From contig JAKMXF010000302.1 in assembly GCA_024704765.1 (NCBI GenBank), forward strand, positions 62,001-126,000: a DNA stretch of 64,000 nucleotides, in the 5' to 3' direction. The stretch's first letter is position 1; every line of letters begins with the position of its first letter. Origin of the DNA: Oopsacas minuta. Lineage: Eukaryota; Animalia; Porifera. Positions 1 through 10,428 of the stretch are shown piece by piece. Made by a program: the position numbers and the translations under genes. The notes beneath the pieces were generated by a model that searched no databases, had not been told where the DNA came from, and saw only the letters and a program-made list of their open reading frames with translations.

Positions 1-2
1 AT

Positions 3-1088
3 GATATTACTACAGAGCTGTCTGGCTTTGCATTGAACATAAACACGAATACTACTATTAGTAGAATTGAACCTTCAAATTATGACCATTCTCTCTCCCT
101 GATTCCTACAAATGATATTTCCCCTATCCTCCCAGAACCATTTCCTGAGATTTTAGAGCCCAATTATATTGCCCCTGTACCTGTATGTCTCACACCATCA
201 GATGGTACCTCTGCTACGAATTATTCCGATAAAGTTCGCAGAGAATTACCAGATCAGTACCGATCAGCTGGTGTCCCTATCTACTCTGCTTGTCCTTACG
301 GTAGCGGAAGATCTGAGCTTATGGATGCTAGAGGAATAGCTGTACAAAGGAATGCTAAGAGAATATACATTGCAGATAGAGGTAATAATCGTGTACAAGT
401 TTTTCGTGACACAGGGAAATTCGTATTTAGTTTCACTGACATAGAGATGGAAGGTCCAAAAGGTATTTGTATCAAAGAGAACCTTGGATTAGTATTCGTT
501 ACAATGTGCGACAAGAACTCTGTTCATTGTTACTCACTAGATGGTTACTTACTCAGAAAGATAGGTCGTTCAGGTGTGGGACTCTCTCAATTCAATCAGC
601 CCTGTGGTATAGCTACTGATAACATCTGTAAGGTTTATGTGTGTGACTTTGGAAATAATCGTATACAAGTGTTTACTAAGGATTTGAGATGCATAACAAT
701 CCTCACCAATAAAGTTACTGAACCAACAGACGTTAAGATTATTAACGATGTTGTGTACATATTAGATCATAGAAAGTTGTGTGTCAGTACATTCAGTAGG
801 GGAGGAGCCTTCATGAGTGAGATTGTATCTTGTGGACCTGAATCGTACCAGGTTAAACACCCATACTTCTTTGATATCGACTCCAGAGGCAATTTCTTGA
901 TATCAGATCTCTATAACGATTGTATCAAGGTATTCTCTCCGAGTGGTAAATTCCTCTGCGATATTGGGGCCCCTGGAGATGATGAGGGACAATTCATAAG
1001 GCCCACAGGCATTGCACTTGTTGAATCATGTATTGTTACGATATGTGAAAGAGCGAAGAATCAGCTTCAAATTTTCAAACTGGACTGA
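3..1088 (+). CDS. NHL-repeat beta-propeller protein (TRIM71/brat-like C-terminal half), 5'-truncated by the window edge
   Basis: Repeated NHL motifs (IYIADRGNNRVQVF, VYVCDFGNNRIQVF, GQFNQPCGIA, GQFIRPTGIA). The frame is open from base 3; the ORF-track start at 33 is a TTG. Confidence 0.85.
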   Translation, partial: DITTELSGFALNINTNTTISRIEPSNYDHSLSLIPTNDISPILPEPFPEILEPNYIAPVPVCLTPSDGTSATNYSDKVRRELPDQYRSAGVPIYSACPYGSGRSELMDARGIAVQRNAKRIYIADRGNNRVQVFRDTGKFVFSFTDIEMEGPKGICIKENLGLVFVTMCDKNSVHCYSLDGYLLRKIGRSGVGLSQFNQPCGIATDNICKVYVCDFGNNRIQVFTKDLRCITILTNKVTEPTDVKIINDVVYILDHRKLCVSTFSRGGAFMSEIVSCGPESYQVKHPYFFDIDSRGNFLISDLYNDCIKVFSPSGKFLCDIGAPGDDEGQFIRPTGIALVESCIVTICERAKNQLQIFKLD

Positions 1089-1830
1089 TTATAATTATCT
1101 GTTTACTAATACGAATTATTTGGAGTTTTATTGTTGTGCAATTTTTCTATTTCTTACATATTTTAATTATTTCATATTCTTATAATTCTCCTTTATTAAC
1201 TTAATAATATTAGCTCTTATCTTACTATGTCAGAAGTAAACCATCTTCTGCACGGGACTATTACCTTCTTTATACCATTCTGGATTCTGATATGGATCTC
1301 AGCCTGTGTGTTTGGCAGAATAAAACAGTGTAAATCTCCAAATTAGATTACCTAAACTGATGGAAAATTTCTTTTAAATGTTTATAAATTTTATTTGTTG
1401 TTAATGATTGCTTAATGCAAAATTGGAAATCAATTGTTTATTTTTTTTTTGTATTATTGTCTTGAGAGTTTTACATTTGAATGAACCATAGTAACTAAGG
1501 ATTATAAAGGAATGTTAATACGTATTATTTACTTTATAATTTTCTTTAACACATTCCATACGAACTTATAACTGTTGCCATGCAAATGAACTATGTGTAA
1601 CAAGATACTATTAGCTGTAGAACTCTTACAAATACACAGTATCACCACATTATTACGATTTACTGGAAACAGTAGGAATGTGGATAAAATATCAACATTC
1701 CAATGTGTATCTAGTGAAGCGACAATAAATCCATTATACAATATAATAGCTAAAAACCACTTTTCATAGAAATAACTTTACTTATTGTACTTACATTGTT
1801 TGTTGATAATCTAATAATTTATTAGTTCAT

Positions 1831-3345
1831 ATGATGGAAGAAGAATTGAGCTATTACAAAATGCCTCGTACAGGAGAGAGAGACCTGATTCAAACTCTTA
1901 ATAATCGTCTACAGGATTATATCGAGAAAGTGAAGAGTTCTTCAGAACAAGAGGATCTTGAGCCCAGACTAGATGAGTTGGTACGTAACCGAGATAATGA
2001 CATAGACTCTATCAAGAGTAACTACGCAGAGAATCTGATGGCTGCTCGTAGAACTCTAGATGAGACTGCTAAGGAGAAGGCTCAGTACCAGCTACATAGT
2101 ATCAGCTTGAAGACACAAATAGAGAAAGCTAAGCTGAATATTGCTCGCCTGAAGAGTGAGAATGCTGAAACCGACAATAAGCTGAAACAAATAGATGCAG
2201 AGACTGAGAGAGCTGAGCAAGAGAAATTAGAGGCAGAAAACGAGAAGGAAGAACTGGAGAAGAAGAAGATAACTCTAGAAGCTGCTATACAATCTAAGAG
2301 GCATTTGATTGATGAAGCTAAACTGGCACGAGTAGACACTCAGAACAAACTACAAACTCAAAGGGAAGAAGTAGAATTCTCTCGTAAACTACTCCAATCA
2401 GAGACAGAACACGAGGAGCACCTCAAGGATCAGCTGATTGCTCACTTCGGCAAGAGTGAAGCTGATCTACAAGCTGATATCCAGCAGAGACTGGAGGTAG
2501 CTATTTCTAATCTTACCGCCCGCACACAGAAGGATCTGCTAAATTATCGCGATGATTTAGAGACTCATTTCAGTGACAAGAAGCATTCTCTAGAACAGGA
2601 TATTGAATTGCTGCAGGAGAGAATCGAAGTTATACAGAAGGAAATACAGCGATTAAGTCATCTACAGAGTAGTTGTGACAAGAGAGAGACTAGCATACGT
2701 GAGAGAATGAAGTTCTTAAATGTGAAACTACAGCAACAGAAGGACCTGATAGAAGTAGATATACAGAGTCATGCTGAGAAAAAGCGCGATTTAGAAGAGA
2801 CAGCTCTCAGTATTGAACAGAATTATTTACAACAAATTGAAGAGTTGAGAGGATTACTAGAGCTTAGAAACGGATTAGATTTAGAGGTAGAGACCTACAA
2901 GAGAATGCTGAATGATGAAGAGAGACGGCTAAGCATACGGTTAGTTCATATTTGTAACGAAGGGGATCAATACACTACAGATAATCCCACTACTTCTGTG
3001 AATAACGAGTTCAGCTGCTCATTCGTAATCAGTCAAGTAGATTCTACTGGTAAATTCGTAGAGATAACTAATCCCAGTGATACTCTCCTCTCTCTTGCTA
3101 ATCACAAGATTAGAAATTCAGCTGGAGATTCTGAACAAGTTTACAAGTTCCATCAGCGTCATAGGATAGCTCCAGGCGGTGCTATGAAGGTGTGGGCACA
3201 TTGTCCAGAGGCGGTACGTGACCCTCCTAATGACATCATATGGAAGAAAGGGTCAGCTTGGAATATAGCAGCTGGGCAGATTGAACTTCTTAATGAAGCT
3301 GGTGAGGTTATCTCTTCCTATGAAAAGGATGCACCTCTGACCTAA
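1831..3345 (+). CDS. Lamin-type intermediate filament protein (long rod plus lamin-tail Ig domain), no CaaX
   Basis: IF rod start LNNRLQDYIEKV, rod end LEVETYKRMLNDEERRL, and lamin-tail-domain motifs (SQVDSTGKFVEITN, VKVWA, LLNEAGEVIS). Ends in DAPLT*. Confidence 0.9.
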   Translation: MMEEELSYYKMPRTGERDLIQTLNNRLQDYIEKVKSSSEQEDLEPRLDELVRNRDNDIDSIKSNYAENLMAARRTLDETAKEKAQYQLHSISLKTQIEKAKLNIARLKSENAETDNKLKQIDAETERAEQEKLEAENEKEELEKKKITLEAAIQSKRHLIDEAKLARVDTQNKLQTQREEVEFSRKLLQSETEHEEHLKDQLIAHFGKSEADLQADIQQRLEVAISNLTARTQKDLLNYRDDLETHFSDKKHSLEQDIELLQERIEVIQKEIQRLSHLQSSCDKRETSIRERMKFLNVKLQQQKDLIEVDIQSHAEKKRDLEETALSIEQNYLQQIEELRGLLELRNGLDLEVETYKRMLNDEERRLSIRLVHICNEGDQYTTDNPTTSVNNEFSCSFVISQVDSTGKFVEITNPSDTLLSLANHKIRNSAGDSEQVYKFHQRHRIAPGGAMKVWAHCPEAVRDPPNDIIWKKGSAWNIAAGQIELLNEAGEVISSYEKDAPLT

Positions 3346-3888
3346 CTCTACACATTACATCACTATAATTAGTTCTGTTCTATAGATTATTATTATTCTA
3401 AGCTCTAAGTTGTATATACACTTATTCCTTATATTCATGTATCATCCTGCTCTCTCTAATATTTGTTACTTGTCTATCTTTATTGCAATGAAAGGATTTA
3501 CATTATTTTACTAGAAATGGCAATATTTAGAGTGGAACATATTACGATGCTATATTTAGAGTGTCCGGATTATACAATTGAATCTAAACTTGCATTATAA
3601 TATGACATTTGGAATTGTTAATTAAATCATTCATCACGAGAACTAAAGGTCAGATTAGTTCCATATCGTAAAGCTAATGTATCCTACTAGCGTGTTAGAT
3701 TCATATATTCTATGAGCCGCATTGGGAAGCCGTTATAGATAATATTGTGGCTTTCTACCTAGGACTATCAGTTAGTGTCTATATATGTAGATCTCGCATG
3801 TTGTGCTTCATTTGACAACTATATAAACACTATATTCTATACATTATTAATTAATATAACCGATAGTATTAGATATAAAGTATTAGAA

Positions 3889-6657
3889 ATGGCAACACAA
3901 CCTCCCAGGTTAAGATCCAGATCATTAGCCAGTCGACCTGTCCGCCGCTCCACCCCCGCTCCTCTCATTTCGACACATAGTTCTACCTCGTCGGGCTCTT
4001 TTGTTGACTTATTCAAACAGCTGAGTCTAAAGGAGATGAAGATGCACGCTCCCTCTATTTGGAAACATGAGCTTGGTGCATTGAATGAAGACTGCTCGGG
4101 GCCTTTAGGAGTTAGTCAGGATAACTACACCAAAGACTACGTGCAGATAATCAGTCATCTGGATGTAGCAACCAAATTCTACAGCTCAGAACGTGCTGAT
4201 ACAGATAAACAATTCTACACAGTCTTGCTACTTATGAGAGTAGTGACGGATATCATGAAACAGCTGATGGATGAAATGTTCGTGATAGCACCTAATTACG
4301 ACTTTATTGACAATAACAATGAACCTGTTATAGGTAATGGGTATAGGACATTACTACATACTTCTGAGCGATGTTTGAAGGCTTGTCTGAGAGATTTGCA
4401 AGATTTCGCTAAGGCTAGAAGTAGTCGTAGTTATAACTGTAATAAGCATTACAGACACCTGACTACTGTATACAGACTGTTACTAGCTAAAGTACTGCTA
4501 ATCGACCAATCTCTGCAAATACAGATGTATTCTAAACAGGATTGTCTTCTTGCAGACAGAGATAAGCTACCTGATGGATTCATAGACAGAGCTATAGCGT
4601 TACCTATTGAGAACTTCTACGGTAGACATATGGGTCTACAGTACTCTAATCTATTGAGACCAATTCTTAACATGCTTGTGGTAGCCATGGTAACCCTTCA
4701 TGACTGTAAGAACACGACTAATGAGAACATCATCCAGCAGGCAGCTTCTACAATGGTATACGGGGGTCAGTATATGCTGGGAGATCCTGAAGTTAGAGCC
4801 AAGAAGGTAGCCAGGATGTCTATTGAATCTGATATAAGATTTACTAAGAATTTCTGGTCTATTTCAGAGAGTATAAGTGTGAGAGAGGTTATGGGTATGT
4901 TAGGACATCCTGCTGGCCTATCAGAGGAGATTACTATAGCAGCTAAACCTATAGAGTATGTAGGAGAGAATGGTCATAAGGTAGTGCTTACTCCCCCATT
5001 CAAGGGGATGGGATATGAACCTCTGCGTGCTCGTCTTATCTCTTATCTCTGGAGAGATGGACAGGAGAGAACTTCTAACCTTCTAACCCGCAAGCCTAAC
5101 TTGTACGCCAAAGCTTCTGGTCTCATAATCCATTTCCATGGTGGTGGATTTGTAGCACAATCCCCTAAATCCCATGAACTGTATCTCCGCTCCTGGTCCG
5201 AGCATCTGAACGTACCTATTCTCTCAGTAGACTATTCTAAGGCTCCGGAGGGACACTACCCCAGACCTATGGAAGAGGGCGTGTTCGCGTATACCTGGGC
5301 TCTACTGAACCTACACAAACTAGGTACCACAGGAGAGCGTATTATAATCGCTGGAGATTCTGCTGGAGGCAATATCTCTCTAGCAACAAGTCTGAAGGTT
5401 GTAAGTTTAGGGATACGTCCTCCTGACTCCATCTGTATAGCTTATCCCGTTACTTATATCGACAGAATTCCTAGTCCTTCTCGTATGCTGAGTTTGCTAG
5501 ACCCTGTCCTACCGTTTGGAATTCTACTCAGTTGTTTAAGTGCATACACAGGAGAGATTAATCAGATGTTAGATATAGATAATGATAAGAAGAGAGAAAT
5601 GGTGTGTGATCTATCTCGCTTCGCAAAGGAATTAGATTTGAAATCTAATCCGTTCTTATACGAAAGTTCTCACTCACTCCTCCCTAAATCTACTCCTAAG
5701 CGTCCTGCCCCTCCATTCTCCCGTACCAATAGTGACGGAGCTATAGTTCAATTCGAATCAGACACAGACTCTACGAAATCATTTGATATGTATAGCATAT
5801 CAGATTTAGACTGTTTCCATGATATACCAGAAACCATGAGCTTCTCTTCCTGCGAGACTCTAACTGGCAGCTTTACTACAACAGATAATTGTGACGTCAA
5901 ACCAAAGCGTATACCTCCTCCCAGACCCCCTCCTCCTAAGGACAGCTCTCACTCTATCGCCTCTTTTCGCTCTCTGGACATTGTAGTATCAGAAGAGATT
6001 GAGTGTCCCAACTACCTTCCTACACCCAAACCTATATACTACTCCGTAGCTCATCTAGCTAACGCACTAGCTAAGCCTTATGACGTAGTTAAGAAGCAAG
6101 ATGCTGTTGCTAATACCATGGATTCATCTGACTACATATCCTCTAGTTCGGATGATGAGAGAGCTCTAGCTCTCATTGAGCAGTCAGAACAAGATAGTTA
6201 TCATTCCTGTGATGATGATTCTGGATCTGAGGATGAGTTGAATAAACTAGAGGATTTATTGTGTGTGAAGTGTAAGCAAGTTGTGTCTAATTTCCGAGAG
6301 AGTGCTCCTAATGGGACTATTGATAATCTATTCAATGGTACTAAGAACACAGAGCAAAACACTAATTCACTCAAATCAGATCCATTCCTATCTCCCTATC
6401 TTGCTACTCCAGAAATGTTCCAAGGTATGCCTCCTGTCTATATCTATGCTAGTGCTCTGGACCCTCTTCTAGATGATTCTGTAGAATTTGCTAAGAAACT
6501 TAAAGCTATCGGCCATCCAGTCTATCTGTCAATTTCTCAAACTCTCCCTCACGGGTTCCTTTCCCTGGCACTCTCTCAAAAGTCAGGACCTGGAGAAGCG
6601 AACGAACTATTCATGCAGTATTTGAGACAAGCCCTTCTTAATGAGGAAGATGACTAA
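3889..6657 (+). CDS. LIPE: Hormone-sensitive lipase
   Basis: HSL N-terminal domain (FYGRHMGLQY), HFHGGGF oxyanion motif, GDSAGG nucleophile, LDPLLDDS Asp and HGFL His. Intronless; first ATG is at 3889 (the track start 3775 is GTG). Confidence 0.92.
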   Translation: MATQPPRLRSRSLASRPVRRSTPAPLISTHSSTSSGSFVDLFKQLSLKEMKMHAPSIWKHELGALNEDCSGPLGVSQDNYTKDYVQIISHLDVATKFYSSERADTDKQFYTVLLLMRVVTDIMKQLMDEMFVIAPNYDFIDNNNEPVIGNGYRTLLHTSERCLKACLRDLQDFAKARSSRSYNCNKHYRHLTTVYRLLLAKVLLIDQSLQIQMYSKQDCLLADRDKLPDGFIDRAIALPIENFYGRHMGLQYSNLLRPILNMLVVAMVTLHDCKNTTNENIIQQAASTMVYGGQYMLGDPEVRAKKVARMSIESDIRFTKNFWSISESISVREVMGMLGHPAGLSEEITIAAKPIEYVGENGHKVVLTPPFKGMGYEPLRARLISYLWRDGQERTSNLLTRKPNLYAKASGLIIHFHGGGFVAQSPKSHELYLRSWSEHLNVPILSVDYSKAPEGHYPRPMEEGVFAYTWALLNLHKLGTTGERIIIAGDSAGGNISLATSLKVVSLGIRPPDSICIAYPVTYIDRIPSPSRMLSLLDPVLPFGILLSCLSAYTGEINQMLDIDNDKKREMVCDLSRFAKELDLKSNPFLYESSHSLLPKSTPKRPAPPFSRTNSDGAIVQFESDTDSTKSFDMYSISDLDCFHDIPETMSFSSCETLTGSFTTTDNCDVKPKRIPPPRPPPPKDSSHSIASFRSLDIVVSEEIECPNYLPTPKPIYYSVAHLANALAKPYDVVKKQDAVANTMDSSDYISSSSDDERALALIEQSEQDSYHSCDDDSGSEDELNKLEDLLCVKCKQVVSNFRESAPNGTIDNLFNGTKNTEQNTNSLKSDPFLSPYLATPEMFQGMPPVYIYASALDPLLDDSVEFAKKLKAIGHPVYLSISQTLPHGFLSLALSQKSGPGEANELFMQYLRQALLNEEDD

Positions 6658-9201: not shown

Positions 9202-10428
9202 ATGTCACAAAGGTACATTGATCTGTCTTCAGATGATGATGGAAGGAGAGAAGCTGATGCTAAGAGGAAGGTATGTCATTATTTAATTAGTTATTATCCT
9301 CTATTTTATATTTATACTTATAGGCTTACAAACGTCGATCTCTTGGAGGCCCAATTTATAGCAGGGAGCACTTTATGAGTGAGATAATGAGCTATACAGA
9401 TGAAGAGTTGTTCCAACAACTCAAGAGATATAATTTTGACTGTGGACCTATTTCCGGCAGTACACGAAAAGTGTACCAAAAGAAACTAGCAGATAAGATG
9501 GTGGAGGGTCCCCCTCCCCCTCCTCCCAAGGTGCAGAGACGCTCCATGGGTCCAACCATCCGATCTCTGCCCGCTAAACTACCTGGCCCCGAGCCAGAAG
9601 ACGATATGATATCAGGTTCATCTGGCAGCGACATAGAAACCCAGGACTTTCAACCTGACTATTATCATAAGTTAGATATTCATTGGTAGCAAATTTATGT
9701 AATGATATTATTATGTGTGTTTATTTGCTAGACGCCGTATACAGGAAGATCCTACTCAAAGTCTCCCAAACAGCAAATCTCACAAAAAGAATGTGTGTCC
9801 TGACCTCAGTCACGAGACTTTGTTACCCTCGATTCAACTTAAAAGAATTGAGAAGGACAAGAGGTCCTCCCCTCCCCCGGAGGAGATTAACAAACATCCT
9901 CTGAAAATCCAACCAATGCACAAAGAGAGCGTAAAACCAAGACCAAAGAATACGAGCACAGGTACAGCTTCAAAAGATGATGTTTCTATTTGGGTACAAA
10001 TTATTATCTTATTAATCTGTTTGTTTGTAACCGTATTCTTTCTAACTTACATCCAGTCTGCTGAGACTCTTCCTAACCCTCCTGATCTGACTGATATACC
10101 CCCGGCTGTCGTAGATACAGAGCCTCTGGTTGATCCCATCCCTATCCCTGTCAGTCAGAATAGTACCCAACCCCCCACCCCTCCTCCAGAACACAACTCT
10201 ACAATAGAACTAGAATCTCCTCCAATAGAATCAGAATCTCCTCCAATTGAATCAGATCCTCCAATAGAATCAGATCCTCCAATAGAATCAGATCCTCCAA
10301 TGGAATCAGAATCTCCTCCAATAGAATCAGATCCTCCAAAAGATTCTAATAGTGACAAGAAATCTAAGAGGAAGAAAAAGTCTTCCTCCATCAAAGATAA
10401 AAGTTCTATAAAGGAAAGCACAAGATAA
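9202..10428 (+). CDS. LEM-domain inner nuclear membrane protein (emerin/LAP2-like), 3 exons, ~370 aa
   Basis: Exons 9202-9270, 9324-9670 and 9732-10428 join in frame across GT-AG introns of 53 and 61 nt. LEM motif YTDEELFQQLKRYNFDCGPISGSTRKVYQKKL, then one TM helix (IWVQIIILLICLFVTVFFLTYI). Confidence 0.82.
10204..10338 (+). repeat. Coding minisatellite of 18/21-nt units encoding PPIES(D/ES)
   Basis: About 7 tandem units of CCTCCAATAGAATCAGAT / ...GAATCT within the LEM gene. Confidence 0.9.

Follow-up and report, generated by a model that had tools for sequence, protein, structure and literature searches.

The window, i.e. the whole stretch of 64,000 nt that was analysed (Oopsacas minuta contig JAKMXF010000302.1, positions 62,001-126,000, forward strand), carries near its start a gene that consists of one intact open reading frame in a single exon and encodes a protein of 504 aa (Table 1). 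The product, referred to below as the window protein, has the architecture of a lamin-type intermediate filament (IF) protein. Pfam Filament (PF00038) matches residues 16-366 with 78.6 bits (cut-off 40, E 8.6e-22), with 351 residues laid over 312 model positions (2-313), and Pfam LTD (PF00932), the model of the lamin tail domain, matches residues 399-498 with 47.6 bits (cut-off 34.3, E 2.5e-12). Compared by sequence with solved structures, the rod finds its best match in lamin A/C (6jlb, E 3e-15), the tail matches the Ig-fold structures of lamin A and lamin B (E 4e-12 to 1e-9), and the predicted Ig-like fold of the tail is clear from the sequence.

The rod has the length that is typical of lamins. 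From R26 in the LNNR motif to Y356 at the rod end it measures 330 aa, and in the alignment with two CaaX lamins the 42-residue gap in coil 1B is absent, i.e. the six extra heptads are kept. The coil-1A motif LNNRLQDYIEKV aligns with lamin LNDRLAxYIDRV and the rod-end motif ETYKRMLNDEERRL with lamin xAYRKLLEGEExRL; both motifs, which are used in head-to-tail assembly, are invariant or nearly so among the orthologues. Head, linker and C-terminus are short in comparison with the aligned lamins. The head counts 15 aa versus 40-55 aa, the linker between rod and tail approximately 30 aa versus 60-100, and six residues follow the LTD before the stop codon, where lamins continue for 50-70 more up to the CaaX box.

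Table 1. Parts of the IF gene in the window and approximate loci of the second IF gene of glass sponges
Feature	Position	Strand	Evidence
Coding sequence in one exon; lamin-type IF lacking NLS and CaaX box	1831..3345	+	ORF, orthologues, dN/dS, no read joints
Probable 5' untranslated leader	1797..1830	+	start of X4 cover, in-frame stops, unconserved upstream frame
Short acidic head, aa 1-15, MMEEELSYYKMPRTG	1831..1875	+	lamin alignment; no CDK1 Ser-Pro site
Lamin-length alpha-helical rod, aa 16-368	1876..2934	+	Pfam Filament, 6jlb match, no 42-residue gap
Short rod-tail linker without NLS, aa 369-398	2935..3024	+	no basic cluster; least constrained part
Lamin tail domain (LTD, Ig-like fold), aa 399-498	3025..3324	+	Pfam LTD, lamin A/B Ig-fold matches
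C-terminus EKDAPLT and stop, no tail extension, no CaaX	3325..3345	+	conserved ending; X4 read-through
Probable 3' untranslated region, end approximate	3346..3546	+	declining X4 cover
Second IF gene, approximate	L016 ~3711-5669; L015 ~1585-3539; L017 ~3713-5678

Absence of nuclear lamin signals

The initial annotation had described a lamin-type rod of approximately 330 aa between the Arg of LNNR and the rod-end Tyr, followed by a lamin-tail domain, and it had reported that a CaaX box, a basic NLS between rod and tail and a CDK1 SP site in the head are all missing. The rod length and the tail domain were recovered as given above, and each of the three absences was borne out. In a scan of all 504 aa with three patterns (K-K/R-x-K/R, four basic residues in six, and bipartite) not a single basic cluster was found. 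The same scan detected a basic cluster in the linker of 8/8 control proteins, namely bilaterian lamins, the Trichoplax lamin, two demosponge IFs and the second glass-sponge gene described below; the lamins among them carry KRKR-type clusters at the place where the window protein has its NLS-less linker. Basic clusters that the scan picked up in orthologues are non-conserved and confined to the coiled coil.

Furthermore, Ser/Thr-Pro sites are absent from the whole window protein and from three orthologues; the other three orthologues contain one to three such sites in the linker, none of which is common to all seven proteins. The aligned heads of lamins carry SP/TP sites, and the window serine that aligns with the CDK1 serine of lamin heads precedes Tyr, not Pro. 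The C-terminus lacks a CaaX box and reads ..EKDAPLT*, an ending that is common to all seven species in the form ..EK(D/E)AP(Q/L)T*. The sequence also has neither a Gly2 for myristoylation nor a cysteine near the C-terminus.

Transcription and completeness of the gene model

One objection is that the missing signals represent an annotation artefact, i.e. that a further exon supplies the actual protein with an NLS, a CaaX box or an extended head. Checks of conservation and transcripts matter at this point, because signal-less lamins claimed earlier for sponges resulted from faulty gene models; CaaX- or LTD-less lamins of sponges and crustaceans have been traced to incomplete gene models (PMC10125929).

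A word search of further glass-sponge assemblies yielded six orthologues of full length (500-505 aa, 66-76% identity) and one fragment of 318 aa. The six full-length proteins agree with the window protein in start, stop and missing signals. Their heads all begin with M(E)EE.S(Y/F)Y(K/R).(P/A)R(T/A), the motif SYYK.PRT being kept, and their ends read ..EK(D/E)APQT (6/6). Start and stop are thus kept in seven species, which speaks against additional terminal exons. Moreover, stop codons lie in frame at 1804-1809, just 5' of the window ATG, and the DNA upstream of the ATG shows interspecies indels of lengths not divisible by three and no in-frame conservation, which likewise argues against a longer head. 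In one species the first ATG is GTG, hence conservation begins at the coding start. The window gene evolves under purifying selection, with a Nei-Gojobori dN/dS of 0.17 in the one unsaturated species pair and of 0.07-0.08 in the comparisons with the window; the linker is its loosest part (approximately 0.33).

The window gene is transcribed. Four public runs were compared with positions 1-5900 of the window, and splice joints were found in none of the four over this range. The runs X1 and X2 cover it evenly throughout, as DNA would. Run X4, which comes from the same sample, has zero cover at 1380-1773 and very high, fragmented cover through the open reading frame, from a contig that starts at 1797 onwards, giving an RNA-like span of approximately 1797-3447. 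One X4 contig (3335-3447) crosses the stop codon and is colinear with the genome. Cover then declines from approximately 10,000 to 884 over 3350-3546 and to 37 thereafter; since contigs can fix neither RNA ends nor expression levels, the end point of the 3' untranslated region is approximate. The run carries no RNA label, and X4 is taken as RNA because of its cover pattern. In addition, the orthologue P0004 is found as a complete open reading frame in a Trinity transcriptome, too. The jointless RNA-like contigs, which continue straight past the stop, and the complete transcriptome ORF make an extra head or CaaX exon very unlikely, and we regard the artefact as a whole as extremely improbable.

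Two further observations were made in the public runs. X4 covers a short patch at 1237-1330, in the interval from the NHL-repeat gene to the IF gene, at approximately 6x the level of the NHL gene, with no cover on its flanks; this patch could be a remnant of a 3' untranslated region or a small RNA. In run X5, which belongs to a second study (organism B), the locus (1-5900) was found at 90-99% identity, the non-coding parts differing by many substitutions and small indels; its source is either a closely related animal or a diverged population of this sponge.

The order of genes around the locus is common to the species compared and reads IFT122, NHL, IF, hormone-sensitive lipase, histidine phosphatase, an unnamed gene and a LEM-domain gene. 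The last of these lies in the window at 9375-10428(+), approximately 6 kb downstream of the IF gene. Its first open reading frame (9375-9689) has a LEM-like motif and the next one (9715-10428) a hydrophobic stretch resembling a membrane span; at the orthologous locus (L002/L003) Pfam LEM is present. Its product is likely a protein of the inner nuclear membrane. The gene is in conserved synteny with the IF gene, and the closeness of the two is probably coincidental.

A second intermediate filament gene in glass-sponge assemblies

The best single-LTD match to the tail profile of the window protein was a fragment of 222 aa (P0133), which begins at the rod end (..DTYHTLLEEEESRLNL) and continues with the basic cluster KPKRVFSRKRR, an LTD and a tail of approximately 45 aa ending in CNIM. 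Orthologues of P0133 exist in four more assemblies at 69-92% identity, and in all five the gene encodes a basic cluster as well as a CaaX box (CNIM, CAIM, CTVM or CSIM). Both IF genes occur together in three assemblies, namely ERZ25071281 (window-gene orthologue P0002, second gene P0175), ERZ25072730 (P0005 and P0176, both at 285x cover) and ERZ25069837 (P0003 and P0133). The finding of this second IF gene with NLS, LTD, conserved CaaX box and divergent rod beside an orthologue of the window gene is new here.

In L016, the second gene comprises approximately five exons with introns of 53-61 nt between them, the boundaries being approximate, and its head is short (MSKMDYEVVAPHM). The exons were searched and compared singly, without joining them. 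Under these conditions exon 1 gave a weak Filament match over model positions 1-43 (E 0.009), no IF match was obtained for the middle exons, and Pfam Filament stayed below its threshold on every exon. The gene surfaced as a fragment of the LTD exon only, since the exons of the rod have diverged too far and gene calls are split at the introns. According to the summed exon lengths its rod measures approximately 350 aa, equal to that of the window gene. A comparison of two species gave 64-81% identity for all exons, and in two more closely related species dN/dS ranges from 0.03 to 0.43 per exon; the second gene, too, evolves under purifying selection. A lamin with a nearly unrecognisable rod that is missed by IF profiles is an oddity in itself.

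Given its basic cluster and its CaaX box, the second gene likely encodes the nuclear lamin of glass sponges. Because it is present in the same glass-sponge assemblies, the window gene would not be the only lamin of the animal; we infer its presence in the genome of O. minuta itself from the related assemblies.

Other candidates for a second gene were rejected. P0122/P0167 represent a canonical lamin from marine metagenomes (L006 2737-4801, also L007 and L008) with an SP site in the head, the NLS RPRKRARR, an LTD, the ending CLIM and one short intron; relatives of it are absent from all glass-sponge assemblies, and hence it belongs to another organism. The source is a compact eukaryote of 38% GC, and the lamin itself is without near relatives among the collected proteins. 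P0125 and P0150 were dismissed as glass-sponge paralogues on account of their unrelated samples of origin.

Phylogenetic position

An exhaustive profile search returned 562 proteins at E <= 0.001. The glass-sponge cluster came out at E 1e-294 and 1e-154 and was followed, after a wide gap, by the next match at 4e-40. The top matches are mostly CaaX lamins; by name, the 30 best are lamins of bilaterians, Trichoplax, holozoans and Halisarca, and a glass-sponge paralogue is not among these 30. Rod and LTD of the window protein were also searched apart, and for both of them the highest scores were those of lamins and not of cilin-like proteins. Its neighbours in the Atlas are lamin/IF clusters, with LMNTD1 at rank 27 only. 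As a side observation, the top match of the LTD profile is P0145 from the representative search, a rodless protein of 514 aa made up of approximately five lamin tail domains in tandem.

Two trees that included the rod were considered. In tree 1 (LG+C20+F+G4, 40 rows, without the second gene) the glass-sponge clade has a stem of 2.0 changes per site and is sister to two demosponge IFs (96/94). Tree 2 includes the second gene via its last exon alone, as partial rows; here, window gene and second gene are sisters (93/82), and this pair joins the demosponge IFs at 91/89. The branches of the two paralogues are long, with 1.9 and 1.1 changes per site, and the pairing could therefore be the result of long-branch attraction. 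A tree of the LTD only was unresolved and the pairing absent from it, and the AU test did not reject the pairing (p 0.49). Direct comparisons of the tails add to this picture. The window LTD matches the five LTDs of the second gene with 63-69 bits and everything else outside its own cluster with at most 54, and the motif W-(A/S)-(N/H)-C is common to the LTDs of both glass-sponge genes and absent from those of demosponges. Taken together, the two genes likely pair as sister paralogues, but the pairing is not secure; the tree fits a duplication that would have occurred within the glass-sponge line.

The trees also bear on the assumption that the window gene might be the glass-sponge orthologue of the cilin/nematocilin/cytovec/LMNTD clade, which would imply a single origin at the base of animals. 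The window protein does present the signature of this clade, i.e. no NLS, no CaaX box and a retained LTD (bioRxiv 10.1101/2025.08.21.671432). Moreover, the siliceous-sponge IF group adjoins two deuterostome proteins in both trees (88/74 and 93/87), which are putatively cilin-like and stand for the clade in trees built without its ctenophore or cnidarian members. However, the window gene is not placed inside this cilin-like pair; it groups with the NLS-bearing demosponge IFs (96/94) and with the CaaX-bearing paralogue. The preference of its rod and LTD for CaaX lamins and the low rank of LMNTD1 in the Atlas point in the same direction, and the preprint puts sponge IFs outside the cilin clade save for one Oscarella gene (bioRxiv 10.1101/2025.08.21.671432). 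We hence consider cilin orthology quite improbable. If true, it would alter the history of the window gene, not its predicted location.

Cytoplasmic filament or part of the lamina

The loss of every nuclear-envelope signal of lamins suggests that the window protein probably forms a cytoplasmic filament. Our preferred reading, which we hold with moderate confidence, is that the window gene encodes a glass-sponge-specific, lamin-derived IF that functions off the nuclear envelope and most likely assembles into filaments in the cytoplasm; location and filament formation are both predicted from its sequence. The scenario behind it would be as follows. A lamin-type gene would have been duplicated in the sponge or glass-sponge line. 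The window copy would have kept the parts for dimerisation and head-to-tail assembly, i.e. the full lamin-type rod with both end motifs and the Ig-like tail, and would have lost those for targeting to the inner nuclear membrane, i.e. NLS, CaaX tail and CDK1 sites. The sister copy would have kept NLS and CaaX box and would likely serve as the nuclear lamin. Among lamin copies that lack both signals, those examined by experiment are cytoplasmic, namely tardigrade cytotardin (PMC4829535) and ctenophore Ml-Cilin (bioRxiv 10.1101/2025.08.21.671432).

The initial annotation had named two possibilities for a sponge, either a cytoplasmic IF of independent origin or a strongly modified lamin in syncytial tissue, and had proposed to look for an upstream head exon or a CaaX exon, to count lamin paralogues and to place the gene in an IF phylogeny. 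Neither exon is indicated by the conserved start and stop, the transcriptome ORF or the jointless X4 contigs; a second IF gene with NLS and CaaX box exists in related glass-sponge assemblies; and the phylogeny places both paralogues, on long branches, as sisters next to demosponge IFs. The second gene and the sister relationship favour the first of these possibilities, with the cytoplasmic location as a prediction.

However, the existence of two genes also allows another arrangement, in which the window protein would work in the nucleus as the obligate partner of the second-gene product and would be imported by piggy-back as heterodimer or hetero-oligomer. The partner would provide NLS and farnesyl anchor, the window protein the filament-forming rod. 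The losses of the two genes are indeed complementary, since the second gene has the signals and a divergent rod and the window gene a canonical rod without the signals. In addition, both rods are approximately 350 aa long according to exon lengths, and both genes are conserved and constrained. Nevertheless, phmmer detects no similarity between the two rods, which argues against a common coiled-coil register, and NLS-less derivatives of lamins turned out to be cytoplasmic wherever they were tested (PMC4829535; bioRxiv 10.1101/2025.08.21.671432). We therefore see nuclear import with such a partner as unlikely. By analogy with type I/II keratins, the glass-sponge lamina might even be a heteropolymer of two genes whose products are obligate partners, an idea that we regard as rather doubtful.

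If the window protein is a cytoplasmic filament as we prefer to assume, its gene bears on the standing question of when and how many times cytoplasmic IFs originated from lamins, and could be a concrete candidate for a further, independent transition from lamin to cytoplasm. Glass-sponge tissue is largely syncytial, and a system of filaments outside the nucleus could serve unusual purposes there. Furthermore, the pair of paralogues represents a natural experiment on the dispensable parts of a lamin, because one gene keeps the rod and the other one the signals.

Comparison with known systems

Our literature search found no paper on IFs or lamins of glass sponges. According to a preprint from 2025, cytoplasmic IFs are unstudied in sponges; most sponges have two IF genes, which group by sponge class and nearly all possess an NLS, and the main text names no glass sponge (bioRxiv 10.1101/2025.08.21.671432). 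The nearest relatives outside glass sponges are two demosponge IFs (96/94), 'Lamin A/C' of Halisarca dujardinii (A0AAU8KYD6, P0026) and the metagenomic P0013. They share rod and LTD as well as the absence of a CaaX box with the window protein, but differ from it in their basic, NLS-like clusters in the linker and in their longer heads and tails.

Lack of the CaaX box together with a retained LTD is also known from nuclear lamins, such as mammalian lamin C, Drosophila lamin C, tardigrade lamin-1 and some lophotrochozoan lamins (PMC10125929). In contrast to the window protein, these have kept NLS and CDK1 sites and are nuclear (PMC10125929). Some cytoplasmic IFs of protostomes have the domain layout of the window protein and combine the rod with long coil 1B and the LTD with the absence of both NLS and CaaX box. 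However, they form a separate bilaterian clade (100/100) and have long heads and a typical C-terminal extension.

The cilin/nematocilin/cytovec/LMNTD clade is older, and a ctenophore member has been shown to be cytoplasmic (bioRxiv 10.1101/2025.08.21.671432). Including one Oscarella gene, it is the only candidate for a non-bilaterian cytoplasmic IF that has been described so far (bioRxiv 10.1101/2025.08.21.671432; PMC4448529). Its members resemble the window protein in the lamin-type rod, the usual presence of an LTD and the lack of NLS and CaaX box (bioRxiv 10.1101/2025.08.21.671432; PMC4448529), whereas our trees do not place the window gene within this clade and group it with the glass-sponge paralogue and the demosponge IFs.

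Finally, tardigrade cytotardin, the collembolan isomin and a lamin duplicate of copepods are lineage-specific, lamin-derived cytoplasmic IFs (PMC4829535); for cytotardin, a cytoplasmic lamin duplicate without NLS and CaaX box is documented, for isomin and the copepod duplicate it is inferred (PMC4829535). The window gene would be of the cytotardin type if it is, as is likely, a duplicate of the lamin of its own lineage; both proteins lack NLS and CaaX box and have a rod of lamin length, and the second glass-sponge gene would be the lamin beside it that keeps these signals. The differences are that cytotardin has lost the Ig-like tail and has been located to the cytoplasm by experiment, whereas the window protein, known from its sequence, has kept the LTD and belongs to a non-bilaterian animal.
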